DNA from: Phaeosaccion multiseriatum
Lineage: Eukaryota; Protista; Ochrophyta, other classes
Length of the DNA stretch: 64,000 bases
Assembly: GCA_965112735.1 (NCBI GenBank)
Contig: OZ218953.1
Span: forward strand, 1,302,001 to 1,366,000
Reading direction: 5' to 3'
The notes under the pieces were generated by a model that worked only from the letters and a program-made list of their open reading frames with translations, was not told the DNA's origin and ran no database searches. The translations under genes and the position numbers were made by a program. How positions within the stretch are numbered: position 1 is the stretch's first letter; the number at the start of each line of letters is the position of its first letter. Below are positions 17,638 through 58,803 of this stretch, in pieces.

Positions 17638-20600
17638 CTATTGCTGCGTGACGAAGAACGTCGGCGCGGAGGGAGAGGAGGGAGAGGAGGAGGAGCACTG
17701 CTTGGCCTTCAACAAGTCCCTCTTACCAAGGCCGCCCTCTAACCCGAGATCGAGCCGGGTGGGGCACACAAGCGTCACCTTGACCATCGCAAGCTCCTTC
17801 CAGTCTTCGTCCTCCTCCTCCTCGTCCTCCTCCTCCTCCGCCTCATCCTCCTCCTCGAATCGGAAACCGCCGTAACTGCCATCAGAGCGCTTCTTCTGTC
17901 GGTCCCCCCTCCCTGATCTCCTGGTCGGTCTTACCGCGCCTTCCCCGCGTATGTCCGTTGTGAGCTGTTCGAGGAGCGACAGCACTACATGGCACCTATT
18001 GGGCGTGTTGGTGCTCCGAGCCGATTGCAGGGCGGCGACGGCTTTGGGTCCGAGTGCATTGCCACTAATGTCCACCTTACGAAGGCAGCAGTGGGGCTGG
18101 GCGAGGAGGGAGGACAGAGTGATGGCGGCGGCGTCGACGGCAGCGCTTGCTCCGGCATCACAGCCCCTGTGTTTTTTAAGGATGGAGCGATAGGCGACGA
18201 AGGAGGGGGAGGGAGGGAGGGAGGGAGGGAGGGAGGGAGGGAGGGAGGGAGGGAGGGAGGGAGGGAGGGAGGGAGGGAGGGAGGGAGGGAGGGAGGGAGG
18301 GAGGGAGGGAGGGAGGGAGGGAGGGAGGGAGGGAGGGAGGGAGGGAGGGAGGGAGGGAGGGAGGGAGGGAGGGAGGGAGGGAGGGAGGGAGGGAGGGAGG
18401 GAGGGAGGGAGGGAGGGAGGGAGGGAGGGAGGGAGGGAGGGAGGGAGGGAGGGAGGGAGGGAGGGAGGGAGGGAGGGAGGGAGGGAGGGAGGGAGGGAGG
18501 GAGGGAGGGAGGGAGGGAGGGAGGGAGGGAGGGAGGGAGGGAGGGAGGGAGGGAGGGAGGGAGGGAGGGAGGGAGGGAGGGAGGGAGGGAGGGAGGGAGG
18601 GAGGGAGGGAGGGAGGGAGGGAGGGAGGGAGGGAGGGAGGGAGGGAGGGAGGGAGGGAGGGAGGGAGGGAGGGAGGGAGGGAGAACGGCGGGGGGTGGGG
18701 GAGGGCAAGCCGATGAAGAGTGAGTCAGTCACACAGTCAAACCTAGTATCCATACATTCACTCAGCCAGCCAGTCAGCCAGTCAGCTAGTCAGCTAGTCA
18801 GCCAGTCAGCCAATCAGTCAGTCGGTCAGTCAGCTAGTCAGCCAGTCAGCCAGTCGGCCAGTCGGCCCGTCAGCCAGTCAGCCAGTCAGACAGTCAGCCA
18901 CCCAACGGCCAAGCCGCCCGGCCACGCAGCCACACAGCCACACAGCCACACAGCCACACAGCCAACCAAACAAACCAAAAGCAAACGCACGCACGCACGC
19001 ACCTGCAGCGGAGCTCCCGCAGTGTGTCATTCCCCTCCACCAACCGCACGAGCTCCACGAATCCGTCTTCGGAGAGGCTGTTGTACGAAACGTCCAAACA
19101 AGTCAGCACGTCATGAAGCCTTAGCGCTTGCAACACTTGCGCCGCGTGGCACCTCAGCTGCTGCTGCTGCTGCTGCCTCGATCCCGCCCCCCTCATTGGA
19201 CTCTTCTTGCCTCCACTCCGTCGGTTACCGCCGTTGCTATTGCTGTTGCTGCTGCTGCTGCTACTCAGCACGCTGCCTCCTCCTGCAAGCCCGCCCCCTC
19301 CTCCTCCTCCTCCTCCTCCTCCTCCTCCTCCTCGAGTTTGTTCTCCTAGGCCGAACCCCTTGATGGAGTTCCAAGCGAGGTCTAACGTGCGCAGGCGGAT
19401 ATTGTGCAGAGACATCTCGGAGAGCCCTTTCACGCACTCCTCTTTGCCTTCGATGCCGTTGCGCGCTTCGGGCGGGGTGGGAGGGGGAGGGGAAGGTGGA
19501 GGGGGGGGAGGAGGAGCAGGAGGAGGAGGAGGAGGAGGAGGAGGAGGAGCAGCAGGAGGAGCAGGAGTCTGTGAGGAACCCAGTAACGGGAGCCGAAGAA
19601 GGGCGGCTCAAGTGCGGACTACACTCTTTAGTGCCTCACTCCACTGGGGCTCATCCTGCCTACTAGGTCCTACTCTTAGCCAGTGAGCACATGCAAGGTT
19701 GACGGACCTCCTGCCCCCCGTACCTTGCCCTCGAAGATTGGCTAAGGTTCTAAGGTCTACAAGAACGCGACTCAGCTTCCTAAGGCGACCTACCTGCCAA
19801 CAAGGTCACTAACGACTTGGCGGCCCCCGCAGGCCCTGAGAGAGTGTGGAAAACTGCACCGATGCCCTGTTGGTTTGTTGTGTTCGAGTGTGGTAAGAGT
19901 TGCAGCAGAAGTAGCAGCGGCAGTAAGTCGCAGCAGCAGGTAACAGGGAGAGGGAGAGAGGAAGAGGGGGGGGAGGGGGGGGGGGGAGCGTGAGCAAGTG
20001 AAGTAGACTTAATTTAGTGTGGGCTAGGGAACATTGACTGAGGGGGTAGAAGGCACACTAAGCTACTCTTGATACAGTGATGACGAGCACGCACACTTCG
20101 AGCATCGCTGGGAAACACCCTCCACCCCCCCCCCTTCGCCCCCATGCCTTCCCCTCCTCCCTCCCCCCTCTCCCACCCTCCGCCTTTCCCCTTGCCTCCC
20201 CCTCCTCCTGCTCCTCCCTCCCCCCTCCCCCCTCGCCCCACCCTCCGCCTTTCCCCTTGCCTCCCCCTCCTCCTGCTCCTCCCTCCCCCCTCTCCCCTCG
20301 CCCCACCCTCTCCCTTTCCCCCTGCACGCGCACTTCCCTACCTTGTCACCAAGACTGTTCCCATTGGTGCTCAGCCACACAAGCCGGCAGGCCTTGATGC
20401 TCAGGTATGAGCACAGAGCAAGAGCCCCCTTCGGCCCCATGTTGTTGTTCGAGAGATCGAGCTTGAGAAGGGTGGAGGGGCCTCCGCCGCCACTGAGGAG
20501 GCCGTGGGTGGGACTCTGAGGGACTGCACATGACGACGGCTTTGTTTGTGAGACATAGGACGATGTCGCGGAGGAGGAGGACGAGAAGGGCAAGACTGGG

Positions 20601-21433
20601 TCTCCTCCACCTCCTCCTCCACCTCCTCCTCCACCTCCTCCTCCACCTCCTCCTCCACCTCCTCCTCTTCCTCCTCCTCCTCCTCCTCCTGATCTCGCAG
20701 CGGCTGTCTTGGCCGCTGTCCGGGCGGCGGCAGCGGCCGTGGCGCTGGCGATGAGCGCAGGAACGATGCCCTCAATAGTGTCGGGACCCAATGCATTGCC
20801 CTGTAGAGAGATGGCCCGCACACAGCCCCTGGACAGCACCTGCCCAAACTCGGTGCTGATGGCGTTGAAATTCACGTCCCCGAGACTCCGACCGGCCAAC
20901 GCGAGGGTGGAGCGAGGCGACATCTCATGACTTCCCCCACCCCCTCCTCCTCCCCCTCCTCCTCCTCCTCCTCCTCCTCCTCCTCCTCCTCCTCCTCCTC
21001 CTCCTCCCCCTCCTCCTTCTCCTCCTCCTCCTCCTCCTCCTTCTCCTCCTCGCTCTCCCATCGAACCCTGCTCGTCCGGGAGGAACGAAGAGCGTTCACT
21101 GAGTAGACTGACAGCCCCAACGCTGCTGTCGTCACCCCTGCCGGCAGCCGCTCCACCCCCGCGGGTTCCTGGGCCCCCCCCGTGGAGCCGATCCAGAGGC
21201 TTGTGTGTGGGCAAGTTGACCATGCTCCGGTCGATGTTCCCCTCCGCATCGAAGCCTCGCCCTGACCTCTTGCCCCGCAAACTGAAACTCAAACCGGGCA
21301 TGGCACTATCCACACCCAACCCCATGCTTGCTGACAGAGAGGAGGAGGAGGGGGTGATGGAGAGGAGAGAAGCCGAGCAAGAGGAAGAGCCCTGCCCATA
21401 TGCCTGCCCCTGCCCATATGCCTGCCCCTGCCT

Positions 21434-21474
<41 letters not shown>

Positions 21475-22338
21475 GTCGGTCCTCCTCCTGGTCTGTGGTG
21501 GTGGTTGTGGTGGTGGTGGCGGTGGTGGTGGTGGTGGTGGTGGTGGTGGTGGTGGTGGTGGTGGTGGTGGTGGTGAGCGAAGCGTCGAGACCCAAGGCGC
21601 CCCACTCCCAATCCCCGTCCCACGGCCATCGCCCCTTCCAGTCCCAGCGTTTGGTCTCAATGTTGTCGACAATGGCCTGCAGAGTGCTGTGCAGCTGCTG
21701 ATCCTCGTATGCGAGCAGATGCGCCGGCAGCAAAGTGACCGATTTGGTGTTGTGCTTGTTGGTCTGCCCCTGCTCCCCCTCCTCCTCCAACCCACCGCTT
21801 GGCCCTGATAGCCTGCTCTTGTCCTTGTTGTCGCCTCCTCCGCCCCGCCCTCCTCGACCTTCCCCTCCCAAAGGTGAGCTGCCGCCGACGCCGCCCCCCG
21901 CCCCCCCCGCCCCCTCTTGTTGTGGTTCCACCCTGCTCGGATCGCGCTGACCGTCCCCCCCACCCCCTCCTCCTCCTCCTCCTCCTCCTCCTCCTCCTCC
22001 TCCTGCTGCTGCTGCCGCTGCTGCTACTGCTGCTACTGCTGCTGCTGCTGCTGTATCACCAACTGCTGCTGCTGCGATCTCCGACTCGTGTCCGCCTACA
22101 GCAGTCAACCCATCCGCGCCCCCTTGCTGCTGCGTTGCCCCCAGCCCCACCCGCCCGATAACGTGCTCCAGGGGACAAGAGGAGGACTCTCCAACACCCG
22201 CACCACTAGCACTAGGGCCACTAGCACTAGGGCCACTGCTACTACCATCTCTCTCGACCGTGCCGCTTCCACTGCTCGCACGCAGCATCTCCTCCTCTTC
22301 CAACTGTTGCTGCGGCTGCTGTTGCTGCTGTATCACCA

Positions 22339-22405
<67 letters not shown>

Positions 22406-25400
22406 CTTCTTCCTGTCCACGCCCGTCATCCTCTCCCTCCTCCTATTCCTCTCCTCCCTCTCCTCCTGCTCCTCCTTCTCCATCTTGGTCATTAACCGTC
22501 TCCTCTTCTCAATCTCCGCTGCCCGCGCCTCCAAATCGGCTACCGAAGCCTGCCTCAGCTCGGGCCAGCTCACCACAATCTCCTTCTCCCAATCCTCTCC
22601 GTCCTCCCACCCACCTTGGTCCAAATCCCACCCCGTCGCGCTACTGCTACTGTCTGCATCCTCCTCCCCCTCCTCCTCCCTACCACCACCAGCCTCCTCC
22701 CCCTTCTCCTGCTCCTCCACCTCCTCCTCCACTCCTTCTGCCCAAGCTCTATCCCTAGCCTTCGCCTTCTCCCTTCTCCTCCTCCTCCTCCTCCTCCGTC
22801 TCCTCCGCCTCGCATCTCTGGTCGCCTCTTGATGTATGCGCAGGAGCAGGGCTCGGTCCTGCAGCGACACATCCAGCGGCCGAAAGCTCGAGGCCAGGCT
22901 GTTCGGCAGCTCTCGACACCGCTCTTGCTCGGCCGCCCATTCGATGCTCAGCCTCAGCGCATGCCGCACACGCTTCTCCTCCCGCACCCACGCCCTTGCT
23001 ACGAGGAAGAGCAGCCCGTCAATGTCAACTATGGCCGATTCCTTGTTGGACGAAGGGAGCTCCAGTCGCCGGCCAGTCTGTGTGGCTGACGTTGCCCGGG
23101 TGGCGCCTCCTCCCACCCGGCTGGGTCGCCCTCCTCCTCCTCCCCGCCCCCCTCCCCCTCCTCCTACTGCTCCTGCTCCTGGTCCTCCTCCTGCGCCTCC
23201 TCCTGCCCCCGCCCCCTCGGGACCCTCTCCTCCCTCGTCTTCCTCTCCTTGGACTGGAAGGCCATCCTCGACCTCCAGCGTGTCTGCCACAGACCCATCC
23301 GGAGCCGTCCACACTTGTTCAAGCCCCAGAAGGCAGAGCCTCTTTCCTTGCTCTTGTGTGCGAGGCATGGTTCGCCCCCCCTTGTTTCTCCCCCCTTCTT
23401 CCCACCCCCTCTCCACCGCACCTTCTCCTCCACTGTCGCTGTCACCTCCTCCTCCTCCTCCTCCTCCTCCTCCTCCTCCTCCTCCTCCTCCTCTTCCACC
23501 CCCTCCTCCTGCTCCTCCTCTTCGGTCTATTACCGGAGTCTGTGGGGTCGTTCGACGATGGCGGTGGGTGCGTGCTCCCTCGGAGGACCGACGGGCAGTC
23601 GAGCTTCCCCTCCCTCGCCCCCCCGCTCGCTGCTGCTGCTGACGAGTGCCACCGCTTGGGCGAGTGGACGGGGGAAGAAGAGTGCTGCCTCTGCTGCTGC
23701 TACTGTTGTTGAGGTTGCTGTTGCTGTTGTTATTGTTCCCGCTCGCTGCGGCGGTGGAGGTCGCACCAGCAGCTGTCCGCACGGTCGCCGTACCAGACGT
23801 ATTCGCTGCCGCAGCCGTATGCATACGGGCCGCCGTCGTTGTCTTGCAAGCCAGCTGCATCAACTCTCCCTCCAGCACCAGCTGCTGCTTCCGCGGCCAC
23901 GGAGGCTCGATGCCAATCTGCGCACAGGCCGGTCGGTACGAGGCCAACGCCCAGCCTCGAGAACAACGCGCCCCGTGAAACAGATGGGAGATGACCGCTC
24001 GGGCGGTGGTGAGCGAAACGGTCCGTCCGGTGCCTAGACGGGAGGCATCGAGCTTTCGTCGCACCTGGAAGCCTTTCACTGCATGCCATCCGCCCCCGGC
24101 AAGCAAGACCAACATCTCTAATACGACGGACTCAATCACGTCGCACCCCGCCACCATCACCTCTGCGTGCAGGCCCAAAATGAGGGCGAAGACGTCGATG
24201 CGCGGTTTGCCAGAGTAGCGCAAGACGCCCCCGAGGAGAGAGTTCATGTGGCGCTCACCTAACACAGTGACACAGGCACGCTTTTGCAGCTGCTGCATTA
24301 CCACCTCCTCAAACGTGAAGGGAAGCACGACAGGTGATGATGGTCCCACCCCCCCTGCCGTGACCCCTACCCCTGCCCCTACTCCGTTCGTGTTCGTCGC
24401 GCCCGGCCCAGTGACACCACCAACCCCCTCAGTGGTCGCACTGCTGCCTCCTCCTCTTCCTCCTCCTCCTCCTCCCCCTCCTCCTCCTTCTCCTCCTCCT
24501 TCTCCTCCTTGTGCTGCTGCTCCTCTTCCGATTCCTCCCTCTTCTCCTCCTTGTCCTCCTCCTTCTCCTGTGCTTCCGCCATCTCCTCCTACCTCTCCTC
24601 CTCCTCCTGCTGCTGCTGCTGCTGCTCCTGCTCCCCCCCCTCCTAGTCCCCACATGGCACCAACGCTTATCGCAGTCACAGTTGGCTGTGGATCCGGCTC
24701 GGCAGCTCGGCGGACGAGAATGTCAATCTTCCGAGCGAAGCATTCCGCGATGAAGGAATACAGCACCGCTGACGTCATCTTGTTGTCCCGCCCGTACGCC
24801 AGCCCCGAGAAGGCTGCGACACCTCCGATGCCGTTCGCTGTGGGACCCATGCCTCCTCCCCCTCCTCCTCCTTCTCCTCCCCCTCCTCCCCCGGCCGCCC
24901 CACCATTGCTGGTGGTCGCCTGTTTGATGAGGGCCTGCAAAACGTCCGGAGGCGGCGGCCACTGAGGCAACGGCCAATAGGGCAGGAGCGACCGAAAGAG
25001 CTTTCGCATCTGCTGGCGGTTGCGATGCGGAGGCGGACACGCCGGGGCTGGAGCCAAGCGTCCGCTGCCATCCTCTCCCTCTCTGGCTATACCAACCCTC
25101 TCCCTCTCTGCTGTTGCTTCTGCTCTCTCCACGCCTCCCTCCTTGGCCTCGCCGCCTTCTTTCGCCTCTCTTGCGCCCTTTTCCGCCGCTCCTCCTCCCT
25201 CTTTTTCTCCTCCTCTACGGCTTCCCACGCTTCCTGTGCTCTCTGCCACCTGCTCGCCAGCTGGGCCCTTGGTACTGTCGTCGCTTGGTTGTTGATCCGA
25301 CCGTCCAGACCCCATTCCTCCCTCCTCCTCATGGCCGGGGACAGCTACTGCACTTCCTTCCTGTGCGCTTTGAGGGCCGACACTAGAGGAAGCTGTCGTA

Positions 25401-26488
25401 TCCTCCTTCTCCTTCTTCTCCTCCTCCCTTCTCTCTTGGTGCTGCCGCCTCTCCGTCTCGCCCTGATGCTGATGCTGGTGTTGGTGCTTCGCATGCTGGG
25501 GGGGCTGGCCCTTCCCCTGCTCCTGCCCTCGCATTTGCTCGTAGTACAGCCTCCTCTCGTCGGCGTAACCCTTCTCCTCCTCCTCCTCCTCAAAGACCTC
25601 CAGCAGGTCCAGTGTTGTATCCGGGTAAGGAAGGGCGTACCCCACGCCGAGTTTGGCGATGAGAGAAGCTTTGGTGCGGCCCGCATCTCCCCCGTGCACC
25701 TTTTTAATGTCGTTCAGGGAGCCGCCGCAGATGGGGCAGCGACCTCCGCTGGCACCCGTCTGCGCTGCAATCAGGAAGAGGCGCTGCACTTCCTTGCTGA
25801 AAGTGCACTGCGCGCAAATCAAGCAGGCCATTGTGCACACAGGCTCCAGGGAGGTGGGGCCGAGGACGCTGGCGCTGCCCACATTGGCAGCGCAGATGGC
25901 ACAACTTGAGTCTTTGGCCGTGAGGTTGCGGTGAATCTGCTTGTATAAGAGCGCCGCTCGGAGAGTCGATGCAAAGTGGTCGTCTTCGTCTCCGTCTCCC
26001 TCCATCAAGTGTTTGGCCCGCCGCTCCATCTCCTCTGAGGTCCCCCCTCCCATCTTCTTTCCCACACGCTGACGGAGGTGATCTCCAGCGCCCTCTTCTC
26101 CCTTGAGCATGACTTGCTTCTGGAGCGTGTTCAGCGACATTACTAGCCTCCCCACAGTGAAGAGTTTGCTCGCATTGTGGAGCTTCTTGGTGACGCCGCC
26201 ACCGCGTCCACTCCCACCCTCTCCAGGAGTGCTCGCACTGCTCGCACTGCTGCCTGTACTTCGATCGTTCAACGAAAGAGCCGGAATTTCGTGCTGCCTC
26301 TGCGAATGGGGACTGTTGCAGCTGCTGTTGCTTGCTTCTGGAGCTTGGACCAGAAGGTCGAACATGCTTCGGTTTTCTTTTGTCAGCGCTTCGGGTACTC
26401 GCGACACGGAAGGCCTGCGCTTCTCATCTCCTCTATTCTCCGCTGCGCATACATTGACGACGAAAGCGGACCCCTTCCTTGCCTGCAT
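17638..26488 (-). CDS. ~2400-aa protein: N-terminal RING-like Cys cluster, long low-complexity middle, C-terminal RI-like leucine-rich repeats
   Basis: Exon 1 spans 26488-~20343. Exons 19866-19794, 19465-19003 and 18166-17638 splice in frame. LRR motifs: VRAISLQGNALG, LLKLDLSNNNMGPKGA, LVWLSTNGNSLGDKG, LRTLDLAWNSI, LTCLDVSYNSL, LRKVDISGNALGPKA. Cys cluster: CAIC...C..CLICAQC...CPIC. Confidence 0.8.
18208..18683 (+). repeat. Long perfect (GGGA)n microsatellite (~470 bp)
   Basis: Directly visible in the last intron of the LRR gene, where it reads (TCCC)n on the sense strand. Similar tracts lie at ~7416-7580 and ~8966-9195. Confidence 0.97.
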
Positions 26489-46883: not shown

Positions 46884-49800
46884 ATGCCCTCCCCCTTTCT
46901 CAAGTCTGTGCCAAAGGGCAAGGAGACACGTGCCAAAGAGTCGGAAAAGAGAAAGTTCAGGGAGCGCGTGAAGCAGCTGTGCCCCACCCTGAGCGATGAG
47001 CAGGCCGAATTGATCATTCCCTCGGCCAAGGTCAGTCGAAGAAAAAGGGGGCTTGCGCTTCCCCATGGGCTTTATACCCCTTCCCCGCCCTTTCTTCTCT
47101 CTCCCTCCCTCTCCTTCTCTTTCTTCCTCCCCACCCCACCCCCTCTTTCTCTCTATGCACACTCCTCACTTTGCTCTCTCGTTCTTTCGTCTCTCCAGTC
47201 CGAAGAGCTTCGCCTCTGCAAGTTGGGCAAGCACGACGCGCTCTATCGAGTGGGGCAGGAGGGGCAGCCCATGTTTATAGAGATGGACGGGGAGGGCGTT
47301 CACGAAGGGAAGCCGCAGCTCATCCCCAGCTGCTACAGCCTGCACATTGCTCCCCAGCTGCTCCGGGTGGTCACAGTGTACCCAGGGTAAGTCCCGCAGT
47401 GCCACACCACTACGTGTATGGCTTCCCTCCGTCGTTGCCTGTGTGCCTGTCGGACTATCAAAACGCCTATTGCCTACCTTGATTTCCGCCTTTCCGACCC
47501 CCCCCCCCCACCACCCCCTTCTCACCCTTTCTCACCCCTCCGCTGACCTGACCTTTCTCCGCTGCCCTGCCGCCCCGCCGCGTGTCTCCGCACACCCCAC
47601 AGAGTGGACAAGCGAGTATGCCAAGGCGCTGACCTCTTCCTCCCTGGAGTGGTACGACCCGACGATATGGAGACGGAGGCTCTCCAGCTCGGTGTGGAGT
47701 GGCCGAGCCTGGTCTTTGGAGAGGTGAGAAGGGAAAGTACGGTCAATTCGGGTAGTATAAGAGGAATGCTTCCTCTGGGGAGCGTGGAGAGAGCGTACGG
47801 GGAGGAGGAGGAGGAGGAGGAGGAAGAGGAGGAAGAAGAGGAGGAAGAGGGAGAGGGAAAGGAGGAGGAGGAGGAGGAGGAGAGGAGGAGGAGGAGGAGA
47901 GGAGGAGGAGGAGGAGGAGGAGGAGGAGGAGGAGGAGGAGGAAGAGGAAGAGGAGGGGAGAAGGGGAGGGGCATCGGAAGAATGCTGGCGTGAGATGCAC
48001 AGACGACTAACGCATTTGATGGGGCCATTGTTTAGTTCGACTCCACACATGTATGTGTATGTATGGGGGGGCTGCGGAAGTGTCTTCTTGAGCCGCTCTC
48101 CCTCCCCAACCCCTCCCCCTCTCCCTGCCCTCTTCCTCTCCACTTCCTCGCCCTCCCTCCCCTCACCCTACTCCCTCCCTCCTCTCCTCCCCTCTCCCCT
48201 CCCCCCCCCCCCCCAAACCCAAAATCCCAAACCCTCCCAAACAAACCAAACCCAAAACAGCCGTTTCAGAAAGGAGACTTGTGCTGTCTGGTGACGCAGG
48301 GCGGCTGGGCCCCCTTTGCGGTGGGGTACTTTGCCCTGCCCTCCTCCGACCTCCCCACTAGCGGCATGCAGGGCACTGGAGTCATGGTCATTCACCACTT
48401 GTTTGACGCCCTGTGGGACAGTGGGACCGGCCTCATGCCGTCCCTGGAGCCCCCGGCCTCGGCAGTGGAGGCCGTGGAGGCGTACGCCATCGCTCAGGAG
48501 GAGAACATGGAGAGGGCAAGAGTGCAAGAAGGTGCGTGAGTGTGTGTGTGTGCGTGTGTGGAGTGTGTATTTATGTGTGTGTGTGTACGTGCGTGTGGTG
48601 AATGTGAGTGGAGAAATAAGTTCCTTTTACCTGCCTGCCTCCCTCCCTCCCTCCACGCCTTGTGTTATTCTCCTCTTTCGCCACGAGGTTTGACCCTATG
48701 TCTTGCTTTCTTTGCTCTGATGAGTCCCCACCTCACCTCCATTTGGCGGTACTGTCTGTCTCTCTCCCCACCCGCTTTCTGTGCTTTGCTCTTTGCTGTC
48801 CTCCCCCCTCCCCCTTACTTTAGCACTCCGAGCGGAGAAGCAAGCGAGGCTCGACCGCGCAAACAGGCTGACGGAGTTGGTGCAGAGAAAGAGAAAGGTT
48901 GAGAAAGTGCTAAGGCAAATCACAGAAATGAAGGCTGCCTCTGCTGTCTCAGGGAAGGTCTTCGACGTAGACCAGCAGGCAAAGGTGGACAAGGAGGGCG
49001 AACTGATGGAGGAGATGAAGAGCATGGAGGAGGAGACGTTGAAACTGTCAATGCTGGAGCAGCAGCAGCAGCAGCAAGCGGGACCCGAAGGGGCGGGAGC
49101 AAGAGTGGAAGTAGGAGGAGGTGGAGACGCGGGGGTGCGAGTAGGAAGAGAGGAGAGTGGAGCGGACGATTGGGAGGATTTAGCGGCTGACCAAACACAA
49201 GAGTCTACATCTTCTTCGCGCTCACGTTCAGACTCCCCGGCCCTGAGGGTGGAGGCTGTTCAGCTTCACGACGCGGATGCAGTGGGGGCGGTGCTGGTGA
49301 GCAAGATGGAAGCTCGTTCGGTGGAGGGAGGGGAGAGAGAGGCCTCACCCGGATCCACAGCTGCTGATGCTGCTGCGGCTGCTGTTGGTGCTGATACCGC
49401 TGGGGGCGCAAGTGGTGGTGCCGGTTATGAAAAGGATGAGGACCGGGGAGAGGTGGAAGGCTGTGATGACAAAGAGGAGCAAGAAGAACAAGGAGTGGAG
49501 GGTGAGGAGGAAGCGAAGGGGGAAGAGGAAGGACAAAACGAAGAAGAACAAGAAGAAGACGCCGGAGAGAGCACAGAGGAGCGCCAAGCCCGGCTCGATG
49601 AAACGTTCATGCACGCCGCTTTCACTGTCCTGCTCGAGGAGGCGCTACCTTGCCTGTCCAATGTGGTGTTTGGCAAGGCGTCCAAGAGGGCGGGGGGGGT
49701 GGGCATTAAGGACACTCGGTGGAAGAAGGCCTCCAACTTCTTGGAGGATTTCCAAGAGCAAGGGGCTATTGTCACAAGGTAAGAGAGAGAGGGGGGGGGG

Positions 49801-50705
49801 GGCGGGGAGAGAGAGGGAGCGAGGGAGGGAGGGAGGGAGGGAGGGAGGGGGGAAGGGAGAGAGAGAAAGGGAGGGAGGGAGGGAGGGAGGGAGGGAGGGA
49901 GGGAGGGAGGGAGGGAGGGAAGGGGGAAGGGAGGGAGAGAGGGAGGGAGGGAGGGAGGGAGGGAGGGAGAGATGGAGAGAGAGAGAAGAGAAGTGGAATT
50001 GGAACCTCTCTGACTCTGCTGCTCCTTCTTCCTTTACTGCTACTGCTCTTGCTTTGCGCTCTGCTCCCTCCGGCCCCTTGTGGTCTGGACTGGACTCGAC
50101 GGGTCTTCACGGCGGATCGCGAAACAGGGAGGTGAAGGTCGGCGTGGTGGAAGTGTCTTCCTTTCACCGAGACGCGGTGCCGCCTTTTCAGCTCGTGACT
50201 GAGCCCCCCGAGGGAGGGGCCGGACAAGCGCAAGGCCTTCTCTATGCAAGGGGAAAGAGCAAGGCATTGGTCAAGAAGAAGGGGGGCGTGGTGCAAGTGT
50301 CCATGAGGAAGGTCAGGGGCAAGAACGTTACGTTTATTGACGGACTGGAGAGCTGGGGCTTGTCAAAGGACGACATGCAGGTATGGAAGTGTGAACGAGA
50401 GGGTTCAGGAAGAGAAAGGGGGGATCGAAGCCTACCACGTGTGCCCAAGTACCCCCTCACGCCCCCTCGTCTTTTCTTACGTACTTGTCGTCTTTTCTTA
50501 CGTACTTGCCGGCTCTGACTAACGTAGTATGCATAGATTGTATTGAAAAATCCCCGCCGCCCCCCCCATGCGGCTTTCTGTGTTTGGCCAATTGGCGGAG
50601 TGGCGAGTGGCCGTGACGGACAAGTCAATCCCTGTCTGTCTGCCCATCTCTCTCCTCACTCGTGCTCGCTCGCTCCCTCGCCGCCCTTGCCCCCTCTTGC
50701 CTTGG

Positions 50706-50760
<55 letters not shown>

Positions 50761-51068
50761 GTCTGATTGGCCCTGACGGACTCTGACTGTCTCTGACTTG
50801 TGACTCTGACTGTGACTCATTGATGGACGACCGATGCGAGTAGGACGTGGCCAAGGACTTCCGCAAGCGCTTCAGCGCGAGTGCCTCCGTGAGCGAGAGA
50901 GGAGGCACACAGGGCGGTCGCAGCGATGTGCGAGGCAAGCTGTGGAGTCTGCAGGTGCAGGGCAAGTATGCGGAGCAAGTAGGGGCGGCGCTGAGGGAGA
51001 AGGGGGTGACCAAGGTGGACGTCAGCACCAAGGGACTCAATAAGGCAGACCGGGCCGCCAATGTATGA
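46884..51068 (+). CDS. EIF2D: Eukaryotic translation initiation factor 2D (ligatin): pre-PUA/PUA, winged helix, SUI1
   Basis: Pre-PUA/PUA motifs KESEKRKFRE, GADLFLPGV, PFQKGDLC..APFAVG, GTGVMVIHHLFDALW. Winged-helix motif IKDTRWKKASNFL. SUI1 motifs KNVTFIDGLE, AKDFRKRFSASASV, LQVQG. Confidence 0.9.
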
Positions 51069-51327
51069 TGTGAGGGATCGATGGAGGAGGAGAGGAGAAG
51101 GGGGCGTGCTACCGGTGCCGAGGTAGAGAGAAGACGTGGACATATTACGTATATTATGTATATAACATTAGCTCCTATAAACCGTTCAGCGCTGAATCGG
51201 CAGCCTCTGCTAAGGCCGTCCTCTCATCATCTGTGAACATCTCTTCACGATGTGCATCCTTACCGATGGTTTCAGGCATGTGCAATCCGGGGATGAATAA
51301 ATACAAGAAGTCGGCCACTTCAAAGTA

Positions 51328-51852
51328 AGCGTTCGGCCCCGTGCACGCCTAGGGGCCTAGGCCTATTTTGGAAAATTGCCCGGCCTAGCGAGGGCCGTAG
51401 GCCCTCGGCCTATTTATAGGCCGCCTAGGCGGCGGCCTAGGTGGGGGCCGGAGGCCCGCGGCCTAGGGCAGACGCCAACAAGGCGCAGGTCCAGGGCGGG
51501 AATATGCTCATATGCCCCTGACCTGGCCCGGAACCCGCCCAAGTGTCGTCAGTTTTAAGCAAATGTATTGCATGGGATAAGTGAGGAGTAGACTTGGTTC
51601 GTGTTGTCTCTTTCCGCCTCGCTGGCCCTACGAGGAGTGCAGGCCTACAGGTGTGCTGCTACCCACTGGCTGGGCGGCACCACGCACGCGCCCACGGTCA
51701 CTGGGAGGCTGCCTAGAGGCGGGCTAAAGGCCGCCTAGGGCTGAAAAGTGAGCGGCCTAGCGGCCTAGAGCCTAGGCCGCTAGGCGTGCACAAGGGTACT
51801 TAAGAAAACGTCGTTTTCTTAAGTACCCTTGGCGTGCACGGGGCCGAAAGCT
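51328..51852. mobile_element. MITE-like non-autonomous element (~525 bp) with ~34-bp terminal inverted repeats; the right TIR is interrupted
   Basis: Left end gcgttcggccccgtgcacgcctaggggcctaggc (51329-51362) matches the reverse complement of 51770-51791 joined to 51840-51851, with 2 mismatches. Subterminal GGCCTAG motifs repeat near both ends. No coding capacity. No clear outer TSD. Confidence 0.7.
51792..51830. mobile_element. 39-bp perfect palindromic insertion flanked by a 9-bp direct repeat (ggcgtgcac)
   Basis: aagggtacttaagaaaacg-t-cgttttcttaagtaccctt, with direct repeats at 51783-51791 and 51831-51839. Confidence 0.75.
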
Positions 51853-51964
51853 CGAAAGCGTGTTGAAGGGAAAACAAAGTCAACAAATGTCGATACCGAT
51901 TTTCTTTGGCTCAGCGCCCCAGCCCCTCTCGGGGTATAATGATCGTATAATTGCCCTCTTCTCG

Positions 51965-54476
51965 ATGCCCAACATGCTCCTGCGGTTGCTCTTGCTGCTG
52001 CTGGCCGTGGTGGGGAGCTCCGCTGCGGTGACATGGAAAGACGGCCCCGGTGCTCGCTGCTCGGATCGGCAAAGCCTCACCTTGGAAGACGCAGTTGAAA
52101 AGCTCGGTGAGTGTGGTGGGACAGCAGACAGAGCACCTCGGGACAAGCGGATGATGAAGGCATGTGCGGGTTGTGTACGGCGTGGCGCACAGAGTGTTGA
52201 GGACACTCACTGCAGCAGCCGGTAGTTCAGTCGTTCATCCCTTTTTGCCTTTCCCCTTTGCTTGCGTCTCTAACCTCTCTCTCCCTTCCCTTACCTCTTG
52301 CTGCCTTCCGTTTTTGTATGTCCCAGCTGCCAAAGTGCCGACGCAAGGAACTGCGGGCCGGAAGCTCGCCGCCACCGCCCTGTCTGCCAACTTGTGAGTG
52401 CGCATTGCCCATCCATGCACGCTCTCCGCCCTCGCACGCTTGAGATGGATGTACGCTTCACCACCATGTAAACCAGTGCAGACTACCGTTACTCACTCAC
52501 TTCCAACCCCTGTTCCCTTGCAGGAGGCCCGATTCGCCGTCCGTGGTGGCCGTCTTTGGGGAGTCCGATGGCCCTGCCCTGGTGCAGGGGCTGGTGGAGG
52601 CGCTGTTCTTCGACGCCAACGACCCCACGCTCTGTGTCGACATGCGGCGCTACAGCAAGTCCCCGCTGAAGCTGAAGGAGAAAATCCACTCCCACATTGG
52701 GGCGTGTGGGGCGCAGAGCGTCATTGTCCTGGAGCACATGGAGGCGGTCCGAGGGAAGGACTTGCGCGTCATGGACTTGTTCCTGGAAATGTGGAACGGA
52801 GAGAGGTAACGAACGAACTACCTCATTCACACACCCATTGGCTGACTCACTCACGCATGTACGCGCGCATTCACTCACTCACTTACCCACTTACTCACAA
52901 ACACTCACTCACTCACTCACGCACTTCCTGACTTGACTGACTGACTAACCCACTCTATCTCCAAGGCTCAAGTCCGACCAATCCCTGTTGTGTGTGCTTT
53001 CGTTTTCTTGTCTATGCGTCATATCCTTGCCCCCCTCTCCTCTTCCCCCTGTTGCTCAATGTGTCGTAACACGCAACATCCGTACTACTCCTTCGCCCCT
53101 GCACTCACTGCTTCTTTTTAACTTGCCTCTTTGTCTGCTGTTTCTGCCTGCCTACCGCATACACGCGCCTCTCTCTTGTGGTCAGATCCTTCTCGGCAAG
53201 CGACAACGAGGTGCTCAGCGCACAAGGCGTACTGTTCGTCCTTCTCTTCGAGACCGCAGAGGTCCTAAAGGAGACAGAGGCAGAGGAAGGAGAAGAACGA
53301 GCAGCTGCAGCGGGCACAGGAGGTTCCGCGCCGGAGGGGAGGGATTGGAAGAAGAAGCTGCAGCAGTGGTGGGCCTTCGACGGAGAGGAGTTCACGGAAC
53401 AAGCGTTCGCGGGGCGTGTAGCGGATGCCGTCATCCTACGGGAGCCGGGACAGGGAGGGGGGGAGGGCGCGAAGGGAGCACGAGTTGAAAGGGTGTGCAA
53501 AGGTGAGGCACGAAGGCTGGGACGTGACTTGGCTCGGACGGACTTCCTCGAGAACATAGTAGTGATGGTGACCGGCGCATACGGCTAAAGAGTGGGCGAG
53601 CGGGTGGGTGGGTGGGTGGATGTCTGTGCGAGACACACGAGAACTCGTCTGTACTGTTCGGGCTGTAGTGGTGCCCCTCAAGTGTGCTTGCTTTGTCCTT
53701 TCCCCTCTTGCCTCTCTGTGCCTTTTGGTGCGTTGTCTCACGTCTCAGGGATGAGCGTCACAGCGTCTCCCTCCGCGGCCTCTTCCTCCCTGGGGCCGCT
53801 AAGGAAGGCGCTAGAGTCAGCGCTCGCAGGGCTCAAGCAGTGGCTCGAAGGGCCCCTTCCGGCGGTGGCGGCCCTGCTCTCGGCGAGCAGTGGTAGGCAG
53901 CAAGCGGGGCTGGCCACAATGGTTGTTGTACTTGTGCTGGCTTTGGCCATCCCCTCCATGGTGTTGAGCCATCCCCAGGGCGACGGTGGGGTAAAGAAGG
54001 GTACCGTCCAGCCCAACGACAGTAACGGTGTGGTTAGTCATCCAGGACGACGAGGAGGAGGAGGAGGAGGAGGAGGAGGAGGAGGAGGAGGAGGAGGAGG
54101 AGGAGGAGGAGGAGGAGGAGGAGGAGGAGGGACAACAGCAGTAGGAGGGAAGAAGGCGGGGGTGAGCAAGGAGGGGACGGCAACACCACAGGCTGCAGCT
54201 CCAAGGAAGGCCAAGCCTGCCATTCAAGGCCACCGTATTTACGGCGGCGTGGAGTACAACTTGACTGATACGTGGCGCGAAGAGGACGACACGAATAAGT
54301 ACCTAGAGGAGTGCGTCACGATTGCTCGGGCGGGGCAGGAGAGCATCGATGAGTACTGGGACGGCTTGTATGAGAAGCACAGGGGGAAGTTGGTCAACGC
54401 TATCAATAACCACACAAACCTGTTGGTAAAGCAGATGTGGCTTGCTGCGCAAGCGCGTAAAGCAAGCCGATCCTGA
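51965..54476 (+). CDS. Type I membrane protein: signal peptide, torsin/LAP1-like degenerate AAA+ domain, TM helix, C-terminal chromo-like domain; 5 exons
   Basis: Exons ~51965-52106, 52328-52394, 52524-52805, 53187-53502 and 53749-54476 splice in frame. Signal peptide [17 protein letters not shown]; TM helix LATMVVVLVLALAIPSMVL. Domain calls are by visual motif similarity. Confidence 0.7.
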
Positions 54477-54831
54477 ACAATTTGAGGAGCAGGAGCAGTG
54501 GCAGGAGCAGGAGCACGAGCAGATGTGGAGGAGGGGGGGCATTTCCCTCCCTGCTGCCTCCCAGCGAGGAAGGGGGCAATCTTTCCATGCGGAAGGAAGC
54601 CCTCTTTGAAGGAATGCCTCTTGAAACATCTCAAAGGAAGAAGGAAGCGGTGTGGCTCTGATCCGAGAGGCGCAGCGGGGCAGGAAGGGGTGAAGGAAGG
54701 AAGGGAACTCAGCAGGGCCGGCAGGACAATGGGAGCGCGAAGCAGCGGCGGAGCAGAGGAGCAAGGCAACAAAGCCCCCCCCCGGTGCATGCATTCTCAA
54801 TCATCCTTCGAGAGAGGGAGAGAGAGACACA

Positions 54832-54870
<39 letters not shown>

Positions 54871-55540
54871 TGATTGTGTTGCCGAACCCTGCGATGGCCC
54901 AGAGCGGGGGAGGAAGGACATGCCCACTGCACACTTTGGGTGTCGTCAGCCACTCAGTCACTCAGTCAGGCAGGCTGTGAAGCAGAGAGGCAGTGAGGCA
55001 AATCTCCCTGAAGCGCTCTCTGGACCTTGCGCCTCTGCACCGCTGGGGCTGTCTTTTAGGAGCCGATTGGGTGAGTGTGCGGCAGTCCTTCCCGTGGGTA
55101 CGCTCTCACTGCCTTCACTGAGGTTGGGGAGGCAGGGGGGGGGGGGAGTGCTTCCTCAGGACAGTGGGATGAGAGGCCTCCTTTGTTCATCGTCTGGTGG
55201 CGTGCTGACCTTCCTCTCTTACCACACGGGGGGGGGGGGCTTGTCGCCTGGGGTCTCCTGGGGTCGTGGCCGGAAGGGGGGGCTACAGGGGGCGGGTGCT
55301 GCTCCTTGCCTCGTCCGCGGCTGCTGCGGGAGTGCAGGTGTGGATGGGTGGGTATGGGCGGAGAGCGCTACCGGGGACCACCCCGAAGAAGAGAGAGAAT
55401 GAATGAAAAAATCGATCTCGAAATTAAAATCGAGAGGCTGACGCTTGCAACTTTTGAAATGCCCCACACCAAACGGCCTCCTTTCACCTTCTTCACAGGT
55501 CTCTTATCGACTGCCGCTGCTGCTCTCCCTCGGGCATCAA

Positions 55541-56218
55541 ATGAGTGAGTACGAAGAGTCTGTTGTCCAGCAGACAGAGCCTGTGGTAGCAGCAGTGGAG
55601 CCTACGGTCCGAGCTGCAATCAAAACAGTCACAGAGACAATGCCGGCACAAGCTGCCCTGCCCACTCCACTCGCTGACTTCGTCTCCCAGCTGGGGATTG
55701 ATGTGGGGGACATGGATGAGACGAAGCTGATGCAGGGCGTGGTAGGCGCGGTCGTGCTGGGTATTCTCTTGATAGTGTTCATATTCCTGTGCTACTCGGG
55801 AGGGAGGAGTGGCAAGAAGAGCACAGCAGGGTCCAAGAGAACGGAGGCGCCTGCGACCCCTTCCAAGCTGAGGAAGGCGGCACCGAACCCTGCGTCTGCC
55901 ACCAGATCAGCGACACGGGGATCACCGACCCGGAGTGGAGCGGCCACGGCGGGCAATGGTGCGGCCAAGGAGGAGCCAGAGAAGGTCTCGGGAGACGCCA
56001 TCGAGGACCACAAAATAACCGGCAGGTCCCTGTACTACTTGATTCGAGACACCGCGGAGTGGAAGAAGGAGCCTGAGACGATAGCGGAACTCGGTAGTGA
56101 AGTTGTGGATGCTTATTGGGAGGAACTGGTGGAAAAGCACGACACGGACGGGACCGTCATCAAGTGCCGCCGATCTGCAGCAGTAAAGGCGCGGGTTATC
56201 GGAGCAGGTGAGGGTTAA
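55541..56218 (+). CDS. Single-exon, single-pass membrane protein with a basic S/T-P linker and a C-terminal chromo-like domain
   Basis: 225-aa ORF from ATG at 55541. TM helix GVVGAVVLGILLIVFIFLC; TPSK and SPTR sites in the linker. The C-terminus aligns with that of the upstream gene. Confidence 0.75.
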   Translation: MSEYEESVVQQTEPVVAAVEPTVRAAIKTVTETMPAQAALPTPLADFVSQLGIDVGDMDETKLMQGVVGAVVLGILLIVFIFLCYSGGRSGKKSTAGSKRTEAPATPSKLRKAAPNPASATRSATRGSPTRSGAATAGNGAAKEEPEKVSGDAIEDHKITGRSLYYLIRDTAEWKKEPETIAELGSEVVDAYWEELVEKHDTDGTVIKCRRSAAVKARVIGAGEG

Positions 56219-57205
56219 GCTAGCGGGGCTCTTCCGCGTGTCTAGTTGGCCCAGTCGTGGTGGTACTGTGTTTGACCGGAGCCCACAAACTGGAGGGAAG
56301 GAAGCCTTCAGATGTGTTCCGTGAAAATCTTCCACAATGTTGACCTCTCTGCCTCTTTTTGTCTTGGCCTTATACTTTTCCTACTCCTCCTGCTGCTGCT
56401 GCTCCTGATGCTGCTGCTGTGTGTGATGCTGAGCAGAGGCGAGGTTGCCATACTGGGAGAAGGACGCAGCGGAGAGATTAGCCATGGAAGAGGAAAGCGA
56501 AGACTAAATTTTAAAGTTGACTTGGGTAGGAATGGAGCGGAGCTGGGGGGGGGGGGAATACATCCCGCGGCCTTGGCCTTTGGAATAGAACATAAACCTC
56601 CAATGGCTTAGTACGAGAGTACACGTTCTTGCTTCTCAAGAAAAGAGTGATGGCTGTATTAAACGTGAGGGCGGGGAAAAGAGAGAAGAGAGGACGTAGG
56701 GCGGGTGGCTTAACCACCACCCAAGGAGATTAAAGCGGCAGCAGCACAATTGGAGACAGCAGGAGGAGCCCAAGGATGGAGCGGCGGGGGGCACCGGTGC
56801 ACAGCGCATAGGAAGGCAAAGGCATACCTCCAACATGCATGCGTTCAATGCCGCGTAGAAGGGTGTTATTTCTTCTATGGGAATGTGTTTGCCTGTCTGC
56901 TTGCTTGTCGTGCACACACGCCATGCAGGGGCAAGTCGTAGTAACCATGGCAGCCGAGGAAGAGTCGTTACCAAACGACAAGGGGGAAGGGCGCCAAGAA
57001 ACTTTACCGGAGTCTAATCTTCTTCGTCAGCCTTTAAAACATTTACTACACCCGCCTTTGCCAGGCACACTCTAAAAGTACTGCCCATGGAAGGGGAAGA
57101 TGTGCATCAAGTATATCTACAATCCTACGTGACGTGTAAGAAATTTTCTAATATTGGTATCATGTTCACGCCCCCCAAATGCCTCCTGCCACCCATCAAC
57201 CACCA

Positions 57206-58803
57206 TCACCCAGTGATGCTGCCCAGCAAAGCCCCCCCGTACATAAACGTCCTTCCCGTCTCCTCCAGACACTCATCCTTCTCCTCTCGGCTCCACTCCT
57301 TGGCCTGGGCGTCAATCTGCTTGCGCACGCCATCCAGCAGCTCTTTCACGTCTCCGTCCCACTTGTAAAAGTCAAGCTGCGAGGGAGAGGGCATTGGAGG
57401 GGGCAGGCAGAGAGAGAGAGAGAGAGAGAAAGGCAGTCAGTGGCTTTGCATGGGGGAGCACATCACATCGGTCAGTAGGCAACACACAGAAAATGGGTGC
57501 CGTGAAGGTCGGCACCACCACAGAGTCAACTGTAGCCAAGCAAGCGACAGAGAGAGGGATAGGCACACACGCCCACTGAGCACACGGCACAGCATGACTT
57601 ACCGTAGTTCCGTCCAGACACGCCTCGGACACTTTGCGTCCAATCATCTGCCCTCCTGCGGTGTGCGCAAAGTAGTGATTGTAGTAGTGGCACATGAAGG
57701 CAGGAATGCTCTTCTGAACGGTTTCATCGATAAAGTCGGCATAGCCCTGACCCTTGTCCGAGGGACCTGGTGCGGTGAGGCTGTAAGTCTCCTCCATCCA
57801 CTTGATGTCTTTCTCAAGTACTTGCACCCGCTCCAGGCCTGTGGAGCGGAATTGTTCGAGCTTTGGAGAGGATTTCACTCCCTGCCGTAAGGTGGTGTGT
57901 TGTGTGGTGCATCAGAAAGAGTGCGGGTATGTGCACCAACACAATGTGGGTATGCGCATCAACACAACAAAGAAGAGAGGGCAGCCAACGGGGGGTGGGG
58001 CAATGGGGCACCAGAGCAGCGGTAGAACAACAATCGCAGCGAGGAGGGAGGGAGGAGGAGGAGGAGGAGGAGGAGGAGGAGGAGGAGGAGGAGGAGGAGG
58101 AGGAGGAGGAGGAGGAGGAGGACGGGGTTCAATATGTACATCTCTCAGTCGCGATCAAGCTCAATGCGCCGACCGATTTGGCCACTCGGTTCTTAGCGAG
58201 CTCGCACAGACAATCCATCAATAGGCTCGGGCGAAGAAACAAACGCTACAGCAAAGCTTTGGTAGGAAAAGTTGTAGACACAGGTCACTCAGCCAATGTA
58301 CATGTATGGAGGAGGCCAACTTACGCACCCACACGCACCTCTTCTAAAGCGGAGTATACCACCTTACTGTCCACCAAAAATTGCAGATACCCTTCTCTGG
58401 TCGGGCTCCACTCGCTAAACTTCTTTCCCTCATTCTTCTTCTCTCCTTCCTTCGGAGCCTATGGCACACAACACACGAGAAGAGAGGACAGCCGGGTAGG
58501 CAGCCAGGCAGGAAGAGGGCAGAAAATACGATGGGAGGTGTGAGATGGATCGGAAAGGAACAGACAGCTCCAGGCTCGGAGGTGGAAGGAGTTTACGATT
58601 GTCTTTGAGGCAGTAAAACGCCAGTACGATGACGTGCTGGCCTTGCTCCCAAGCAGCTAAGAGCCCCCTCTAGTCAAGCGGCAGGCCGAAGAAACGAATA
58701 TCCCCCCTCCCCTTCCAGATCCCGTACTGACGAACCGCTGGCCGTGTAACATGGACAGACACACGCACGACGCACGCACGCACAGACACCGAGAAAAAGA
58801 GAA

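Follow-up and report, generated by a model that had tools for sequence, protein, structure and literature searches.

Two neighbouring genes at positions 51965 to 56218 of the analysed window, a 64,000-nucleotide stretch of the genome of the ochrophyte Phaeosaccion multiseriatum, raise the question of whether this alga attaches its chromatin to the nuclear envelope by means of a protein pair that has not been described before. A sequence-only reading of the locus had proposed that both products are membrane proteins that share a C-terminal chromo-like domain, and that one of them is fused to a torsin-cofactor domain. Here we ask which parts of this proposal hold, and what the shared domain may be if it is not a chromodomain. 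All coordinates are positions in the window and all features are on the plus strand.

Gene models and domain layout

The two genes, here called A and B, are located on the same strand about 1 kb apart, and the spacing between genes elsewhere in the window is in the range of 0.9-1.1 kb. For gene A, a GT-AG model can be kept in frame throughout and yields a protein of 511 amino acids. Exon 1 (51965-52106) contains the start codon, a signal peptide predicted from hydropathy (residues 1-21, with a cleavage-like site SSA/AV) and the beginning of the luminal part. Exon 2 (52327-52393) is flanked by an acceptor ending in tcccag and the donor gtgagt, with the frame kept, and exons 3 (52524-52805) and 4 (53186-53502, donor AAAG/gtgagg) continue the luminal part, which in the fusion model comprises about 270 residues. 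Exon 5 (53749-54476) has an acceptor with a long pyrimidine tract, is in frame with exon 4 and contains 241 codons counted from the ATG at 53751. It encodes, in this order, a juxtamembrane segment, a membrane helix, a poly-Gly linker, the shared module and the stop codon, and its codon score is highest in the plus frame used here. The helix (residues 324-342; 53910-53966) reaches a Kyte-Doolittle mean over 19 residues of up to 2.66. The poly-Gly stretch is an unconstrained flexible linker of 28 glycines, encoded by an (AGG)29 microsatellite (54044-54130). Copy A of the module (54 residues, AIQGH...YEKH) covers positions 54219-54380 and is followed by a predicted helical tail that extends to 54473; the open reading frame with its core spans 53592-54476.

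Gene B is a single open reading frame with a coding sequence for 225 amino acids (55541-56218), and the codon score is best in this frame; the open reading frame with the core of copy B starts at 55445 and ends at 56218. A transmembrane helix was identified by hydropathy at residues 64-86 (55730-55798), followed by a linker of 64 residues (55799-55990) of which 13 are K/R and 22 are S/T/P, by copy B of the module (48 residues, AIEDH...VEKH; 55997-56140) and by a tail to 56215. A donor-like GCAG/gtgagg sits 7 nt before the stop codon, and a further exon is therefore possible. We also note that the window is rich in long spurious open reading frames.

The joining of exons 1-4 to exon 5 is a prediction. 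We infer a fusion because the donor (gtgagg) and the pyrimidine-rich acceptor are strong and join the exons in frame, and because two separate genes would be only 163 bp apart, compared to the 0.9-1.1 kb seen elsewhere in the window. However, exon 5 alone may be an independent gene of 241 residues, in which case A and B would be whole-gene tandem duplicates with no relation to the signal-peptide protein encoded upstream. In such a model exon 4 reads through to a stop codon at 53588, with a GC3 of about 0.68 in this segment (counted by eye), and an ATG lies 2 nt into exon 5. The two products would then share an initial MS and be alike in size (241 versus 225 amino acids) and in layout, with a short N-terminus followed by a helix, a linker and the module. 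Besides the splice signals and the short gap, what speaks against two whole-gene duplicates is that the similarity between A exon 5 and B ahead of the helix lacks significance, being reached in 175 of 3000 shuffles, for which reason we also rejected an extended homology upstream of the module. We consider a separate exon 5 gene to be a tentative possibility.

A module conserved in two diverged copies

Both peptides that had been quoted from the sequence are present as written, and the claim that a C-terminal module can be aligned between A and B is well founded. BLASTP reported 22 identical residues out of 54 (41%; 41.2 bits) with an E-value of 4e-9, which refers to this one pair of 241 x 225 residues and becomes about 5e-4 when scaled to an all-against-all comparison of the six-frame translation of the window (ca. 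1.1e5 residues). The Smith-Waterman score was 89, whereas shuffled sequences gave 26.5 +/- 5.3 and none of 5000 shuffles reached the observed value (Gumbel p 1.5e-7). A profile built from the two copies and run on the window matched these two copies only. By comparison, the regions before the module showed no significant similarity, in line with the description of the N-termini as unrelated.

A and B are paralogs in which the module has been under selection at the protein level. The nucleotide identity of the two copies is 46%, and the codons differ at 12 of 26 identical residues, which marks an old duplication that protein-level selection has maintained. The plus frame gave the highest similarity among the 36 frame pairs that were compared. 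The wobble-aligned antisense frame, the only other one to score high, reached 77. Such a score is an expected side effect of conservation in the sense frame, and the codon score here was poor; antisense coding was therefore rejected.

A helix pattern, V/I-V/I..YW..L(V/Y), is conserved in both copies and is predicted to be helical in both of the low-confidence structural models. As had been stated, each product also contains one strongly hydrophobic segment of 19-23 residues upstream of the module, and the linkers contain S/T-P motifs, namely TPSK and SPTR in B, both of which are full CDK-type consensus sites, and TPQ in A. The linkers are of low complexity, and the pLDDT drops below 50 at the edge of the module.

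Searches for relatives

The module has no recognizable relatives in the collections that were searched. No Pfam family was matched at an E-value of 10 by the whole products or by the isolated modules, a PDB sequence search with the module yielded no relative, and the same was true of the word-indexed searches and of the JGI metagenomes and IMG/VR. Among 1.84 billion (1.84e9) protein representatives there was no true homolog. The sole match in that set (P0001), a prokaryotic sigma-70 factor whose tandem repeats contain AEYWENH.GK, was dismissed as spurious since the match is limited to the helix motif and summed across five repeats. A metagenome match (L001) was also spurious, as it is from a phage-like bacterial contig in which only EVVDAYW matches. 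A WW domain was considered too, as copy B by eye echoes GR..YY....T..W...P, but the first tryptophan is absent, copy A does not have the pattern and the Pfam scan was empty.

Exact look-ups of the proteins in the window matched no record, and no Rfam families were found at positions 50000-58500. The DNA is not of human origin, and nothing in it raises a toxin, effector or animal-virus concern. The host is an ochrophyte stramenopile, in agreement with the sequence-only reading. The heme oxygenase gene that adjoins the pair has a best identity to any known protein of at most 60%, which indicates that the databases contain no close relative of the host. Synteny of the pair in related species found no support in the heme oxygenase neighborhoods of Tribonema, Chrysoparadoxa and two JGI contigs, which contained neither a relative of the module nor a shared gene order.

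Comparison with the chromodomain

The module resembles the chromodomain (PF00385; HP1, Polycomb/CBX, SUV39H1, cpSRP43) in its length of about 50 residues, in the order of three short strands and then an amphipathic helix that is predicted at low confidence for copy B, and in loose echoes of the motif, I.DH[KR]...G..Y.L ... W..E ... and then a helix with an aromatic residue. Homology to the chromodomain, as proposed in the sequence-only reading, was not borne out. PF00385 was not matched at an E-value of 10, whereas control chromodomains were recovered in the same scan at E-values of 1e-12 to 1e-17, and the PDB sequence search gave no match. With hhalign, the two-copy profile was aligned to seven Pfam-validated chromodomains with a probability of 0.6% and a score of 12.6, which was equalled by 18 of 200 column-shuffled queries (p about 0.09), these being thin profiles of 2 and 7 sequences with low power.

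Methyl-lysine binding in HP1 and Polycomb depends on an aromatic cage, built from one aromatic residue ahead of strand 1, from the W of KW and from the Y/F of GY. In a forced global alignment with hhalign the layout is colinear, and the only pre-helix tryptophan of B falls on the invariant TW tryptophan, but the cage residues are missing from this alignment: B is gapped across KWKGY, A aligns one W only in this segment, and the first cage position is occupied by G/D/P/A in both copies. Three columns are invariant in the validated set. Two of them are the W and K of the KW pair, which B is without, and the third is the TW position, where A has no tryptophan.

The AlphaFold models are both of low confidence. 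The module is modeled as strand-strand-strand-helix-helix in B (pLDDT 51) and as a coil plus helices in A (pLDDT 47), so that the two differ in its N-terminal half. Foldseek returned no matches at all for the A model and none that were significant for the B model (best E-value about 1). Ten of the top 50 listed non-significant matches of B are chromodomain chains (CBX7, CBX2, SUV39H1, cpSRP43), with probabilities of at most 0.11; TM-scores were at most 0.36 and the rmsd was about 10 Å. These chains are a hint, though not evidence, of a fold that is more specific than "unknown". Since only two sequences are at hand and the tests are low in power, the chromodomain idea is left unsupported yet not refuted, and we regard a chromo-like fold as doubtful. 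Furthermore, the module in A and B hangs on a membrane anchor, and we know of no membrane-anchored chromodomain; none surfaced in our literature search either.

Membrane topology and the nuclear envelope

Both products are bitopic with one transmembrane helix each, in agreement with their description as membrane proteins. Topology rules place the module on the cytosolic or nucleoplasmic side, so that the C-terminus is predicted not to be luminal. For A, this follows from the signal peptide in combination with a single helix, and the orientation thus depends on the predicted exon model. For B, it follows from the flanks of the helix, the N-terminal side being acidic with a net negative charge and the C-terminal side having five K/R within 16 residues. 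A helix with a C-terminus facing the cytosol or nucleoplasm is equally compatible with any ER-derived membrane or with the plasma membrane, and no canonical nuclear localization signal was seen by eye.

The torsin-cofactor domain that had been ascribed to A did not find support. Exon 3 has a P-loop-like layout without the Walker A lysine, and by eye the order of motifs in the luminal part is that of the torsins, with a dead Walker A. However, the exon pieces of A matched no Pfam family, and in the PDB neither torsin nor LAP1 chains were hit at E-values of up to 10. In the fused model, A is similar to LAP1/LULL1 in that it is a single-pass protein with a sizeable luminal domain that has no Walker A lysine, and with a second domain on the opposite, non-luminal side. 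The orientation is nevertheless reversed: the order in A is signal peptide, luminal domain, helix and C-terminal module, which makes it a type I protein with the luminal domain at the N-terminus, whereas LAP1 is presented in passages of PMC4812414 and PMC4358337 as a type II protein whose AAA+-like domain follows the helix on the C-terminal side. The features shared with LBR and the LEM/HeH proteins are a membrane anchor, a basic phosphorylatable linker and a small globular module that is not luminal, but A and B have no sequence relation to these proteins and no LEM/HeH motif. In a passage of PMC5617974, the N-terminal domain of LBR is described as hydrophilic, and eight hydrophobic segments are ascribed to the protein.

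Taken as a whole, a chromatin tether at the nuclear envelope, with a dead ATPase domain of the torsin/LAP1 type in the lumenal part of A, is unlikely. It draws on the strand and helix order of the B model, the chromodomain chains in the Foldseek list, the position of the B tryptophan, the predicted side of the C-terminus, the basic linker with CDK-type sites and the motif order in A. Set against these are the empty sequence and profile searches, Foldseek E-values of about 1 or above throughout, a KW..GY cage segment that is absent in B and partial in A, the inverse orientation relative to LAP1, and the lack of a visible nuclear localization signal. Quite improbable is the more specific scenario of a stramenopile-specific pair at the inner nuclear membrane, in which a cage-less fold resembling the chromo or chromo-shadow type, anchored in the membrane, would hold chromatin or a chromatin protein, with A being dead torsin/LAP1-like and B regulated by CDK.

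A reversed topology, in which the module would be luminal or face the outside of the cell and serve in binding on the extracytoplasmic side, is similarly improbable. It would agree with the soluble and acidic N-terminus of B, which has no signal peptide, and with the nearly neutral flanks of the helix in A, but it conflicts with the charge difference across the helix in B and with the combination of signal peptide and single helix in A; moreover, the module contains no cysteine pair, and no conserved N-glycosylation sequon was seen in the two copies. Finally, that the similarity is due to chance, or that the reading frames are non-coding in a GC-rich genome, may seem conceivable given the abundance of spurious reading frames, the failure to find homologs and the modest codon scores, but is effectively refuted by the shuffles, by the synonymous differences at conserved residues, by the plus frame ranking first in both similarity and codon score, and by the matching architecture of the two genes.

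Proposed function and implications

The best reading is that the module is an undescribed small domain in a lineage-restricted pair of adaptor proteins tethered to a membrane. More specifically, we hypothesize, with a probability of about 55%, that A and B are tandem paralogs restricted to an ochrophyte lineage and encode single-pass proteins of an ER-derived membrane system with a predicted protein-binding or dimerization module. The C-terminal module of 50-55 residues would be exposed to the cytosol or nucleoplasm on a disordered linker of about 65-85 residues, made of poly-Gly in A but basic and rich in S/T-P in B. It would start with a short strand or hairpin segment (I..H[KR]I.G...Y.L) and end with the conserved amphipathic helix (E.[VI]D.YW..L.EKH). 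As a membrane-tethered unit, the module would most likely recruit one shared soluble partner to the membrane surface, or pair A with B. In A, it would be coupled to the luminal domain of about 270 residues, and gating in B could come from the two CDK-type linker sites.

In several respects, the pair resembles the lineage-specific orphan genes of protists, which likewise have no relatives in very large databases, contain low-complexity linkers encoded by microsatellites and arise by local tandem duplication. It differs from these in that two diverged copies have kept a compact module under protein-level selection, which indicates that the module is a real domain rather than annotation noise. 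If the cage-less chromo-like reading at the nuclear envelope were true, the module would be the first membrane-anchored one of the chromodomain type known to us, and the pair a convergent and inverted counterpart of LAP1 in animals. It would also open an almost unknown question, namely how chromatin is anchored to the nuclear envelope in ochrophytes, where this envelope continues into the plastid ER. As orphan genes are common in protists, the value of the pair is mainly that of a clean candidate, in which two diverged copies define the boundaries and conserved residues of an orphan domain that is well supported but has no assigned function, from an unsampled alga of the brown lineage.

Homology of the shared module

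The adjacent genes A and B, both on the + strand, each encode a protein with one membrane helix, a linker and a C-terminal module of about 50 residues (54219-54380 (+) in A, 55997-56140 (+) in B). The two peptides quoted in the sequence-only reading were found in the window exactly as given, and the alignable module described there is confirmed: BLASTP gave 22/54 identities (E 4e-9), and a Smith-Waterman score of 89 was reached by none of 5000 shuffles, which scored 26.5 +/- 5.3. The + frame scored highest among all 36 frame pairs. Just one further score was high (77, in an antisense frame); it was dismissed as the expected by-product of a wobble that coincides with the sense wobble, and the codon score of that frame was poor. 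A and B are thus paralogs, and their low nucleotide identity in the module (46%), with different codons at 12 of the 26 identical residues, shows that an old duplication has been maintained by protein-level selection. The conserved core is predicted to comprise a short strand segment and an amphipathic helix, with Y-W, L and E-K-H invariant. No third copy was found by a two-module profile search of the six-frame translations of the window.

Gene structure and predicted topology

Gene B is a single open reading frame of 225 amino acids, with its ATG at 55541 and its stop at 56218. The first 63 residues are acidic, and residues 64-86 are a very hydrophobic helix. Next comes a linker of 64 residues, among them 13 K/R and 22 S/T/P, in which TPSK and SPTR occur; the module (residues 153-200) and a short tail complete the protein. 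Upstream, a 29-codon frame (55459-55548) begins with its own ATG, overlaps the start codon of B in another frame and ends 8 nt past it; it is a candidate regulatory uORF. At 55498, also ahead of the start codon, a pyrimidine tract with cag could be the acceptor of a 5' UTR intron. There is also a good donor-like site 7 nt before the stop codon (GCAG/gtgagg, 56201-56218), which could give B an extra or alternative exon at the 3' end.

Gene A was modeled with five exons (51965-52106, 52327-52393, 52524-52805, 53186-53502 and 53749-54476), giving 511 amino acids in frame, with GT-AG at every junction and pyrimidine-rich acceptors. In its product, a signal peptide leads into a luminal part (~270 residues); after these come a hydrophobic helix (residues 324-342), a linker in which an (AGG)29 microsatellite at 54044-54130 is read as 28 glycines, and the module. 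Exon 5 could instead be a separate gene of 241 residues with the same layout as B, and it does start 2 nt ahead of an ATG. However, the two genes would then lie only 163 bp apart, whereas the other gaps in the window are 0.9-1.1 kb, and the donor and acceptor of the exon 4/5 junction are strong and in frame, for which reasons we regard the five-exon fusion as the likelier structure. Immediately upstream of the start of A is a MITE-like element of ~525 bp (51328-51852) with terminal inverted repeats of 27 nt (93% complementary), a perfect internal 20-nt palindrome (51791-51831) and numerous GGCCTAGG-type palindromes. The core of its terminal repeats, GGCCCCGTGCACGCC, occurs in the window at these two sites only.

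The helix of B is preceded by a net negative flank and followed by five K/R within 16 residues, and in A a single helix follows a signal peptide; the module is therefore predicted to face the cytosol or nucleoplasm in both proteins, and not the lumen, a placement that would conflict with the chromatin tether proposed in the sequence-only reading. In ochrophyte plastid targeting, an aromatic residue typically follows the cleavage site. The residue after the likely cleavage site of A is an alanine, which points to entry into the ER/secretory system and away from the plastid.

The luminal motifs of A presumably follow an order like that of a torsin whose Walker A is dead, a likeness seen by eye that we take as a lead only. 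Searches with the exon pieces of the luminal part retrieved neither a Pfam family nor a torsin or LAP1 chain. LAP1 is a type II protein with an AAA+-like domain after the helix (PMC4812414, PMC4358337), whereas A, in the five-exon model, is reversed, the luminal part preceding the helix. The proposed fusion to a torsin-cofactor domain thus found no support.

Relation to chromodomains

Neither module matched a Pfam family of any kind at E 10, and a PDB sequence search gave no relevant match. As a reference, chromodomain ORFs were fetched from IMG/VR via two back-translated motifs; four were assigned to PF00385 in a Pfam scan (E 1e-12 to 1e-17), and seven were aligned. Compared with these, the two-sequence A/B profile reached an hhalign probability of 0.6% (score 12.6), a score reached by 18 of 200 column-shuffled queries. 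A forced global alignment was colinear with the proposed scheme and placed the B tryptophan on the invariant TW tryptophan; the KW..GY segment, which holds two cage residues, is missing from B, A has just part of it, and no aromatic residue lies ahead of strand 1. Canonical methyl-lysine reading is very unlikely.

AlphaFold models from the two-sequence input were of low confidence, with strands (11-14, 17-22, 27-30) and helices (40-54, 61-75) in B (pLDDT 51), and coil followed by helices in A (pLDDT 47). Foldseek gave no match in the PDB for A and a best E of only ~1 for B. Among the 50 weak matches listed for B, 10 were chromodomain chains (CBX7, CBX2, SUV39H1, cpSRP43 and a mouse chromo domain), each with probability <=0.11, TM <=0.36 and rmsd ~10 A from a poor model. 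We judge such chains to be probably much commoner in this listing than by chance, a hint that may point to a chromo-like fold, to which we give about one chance in four. The identification as a chromodomain, and with it the nuclear-envelope tether, is neither supported nor refuted.

Among the IMG/VR contigs with chromodomain ORFs, two are labeled giant-virus MAGs. The ORF at L010:206-406 (-) was confirmed as PF00385, and those at L018:3504-3692 (-) and L017:6377-6565 (-) are candidates, each a short protein beginning directly with the candidate chromodomain.

Genomic context and search for relatives

The window is eukaryotic, with ~58% GC, GT-AG introns of 130-380 nt and many microsatellites. 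Neighboring genes include a cytochrome-P450-reductase-like gene (30.1-33.7 kb, -), an eIF2D-like gene (~48.3-51.07 kb, +), a heme oxygenase (57.2-57.9 kb, minus strand), an M50 site-2 protease (60.8-63.6 kb), and genes for a DUF760 and a Vps51-like protein. The best relatives share 51-60% identity with the heme oxygenase exon, and those with names are ochrophyte stramenopiles (Ectocarpus, Vaucheria, Tribonema, Nannochloropsis, Chrysoparadoxa and diatoms); exact look-ups of window proteins found no record, which indicates an ochrophyte host with no close database relative. The sequence is not of human origin and raises no concern over toxins, effectors or animal viruses.

AGG/GAG arrays of 27-29 units recur (54044-54130, 58041-58122 and 47743-48000), and introns and spacers are filled with AC/AG dinucleotide and TCAC repeats (e.g., 52871-52925 and 54827-54870). 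A GGREGG-type tract in the eIF2D-like gene region (49719-50135), probably intronic, leaves several frames open and yields long spurious ORFs. An unbroken ORF of 2141 codons (20063-26488, -) had no record in an exact-protein look-up and only weak Pfam signals, namely a sub-threshold match to TFIIA and, close to the C-terminus, a single leucine-rich repeat.

Word-indexed searches gave no match with full-length B, nor with the A module at E up to 10. From 1.84 billion representatives, an exhaustive HMMER search retrieved a single protein (P0001). This prokaryotic sigma-70 factor was rejected as spurious, its tandem repeats echoing the helix motif by chance. The protein has 1023 residues and, at the N-terminus, an array of five or more ~42-residue repeats (...GEEALAEYWENH.GKTRGQLP...), for which no Pfam family exceeded the curated cut-off and one sub-threshold match was FlgA_HD-like (E 0.018). 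Since the HMMER search detects ~40 bits at E 4e-5, and a relative as diverged as A and B are from each other (41 bits) would be seen, no relative as close as A is to B exists among these representatives. The IMG/VR scan gave no match to the module, and the single match in a JGI metagenome scan was phage-like, a false positive. Around heme oxygenase in Tribonema, Chrysoparadoxa and two metagenome contigs, neither synteny nor the module was seen.

Possible function

The predicted strand-plus-helix core, carried by a long linker that is itself unconstrained, would suit a tethered unit for binding or dimerisation, and we infer that the module would capture a soluble partner close to the membrane or, alternatively, pair A with B. 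Two CDK-type sites in the linker of B suggest regulation. The module is a real but orphan domain from an unsampled lineage.
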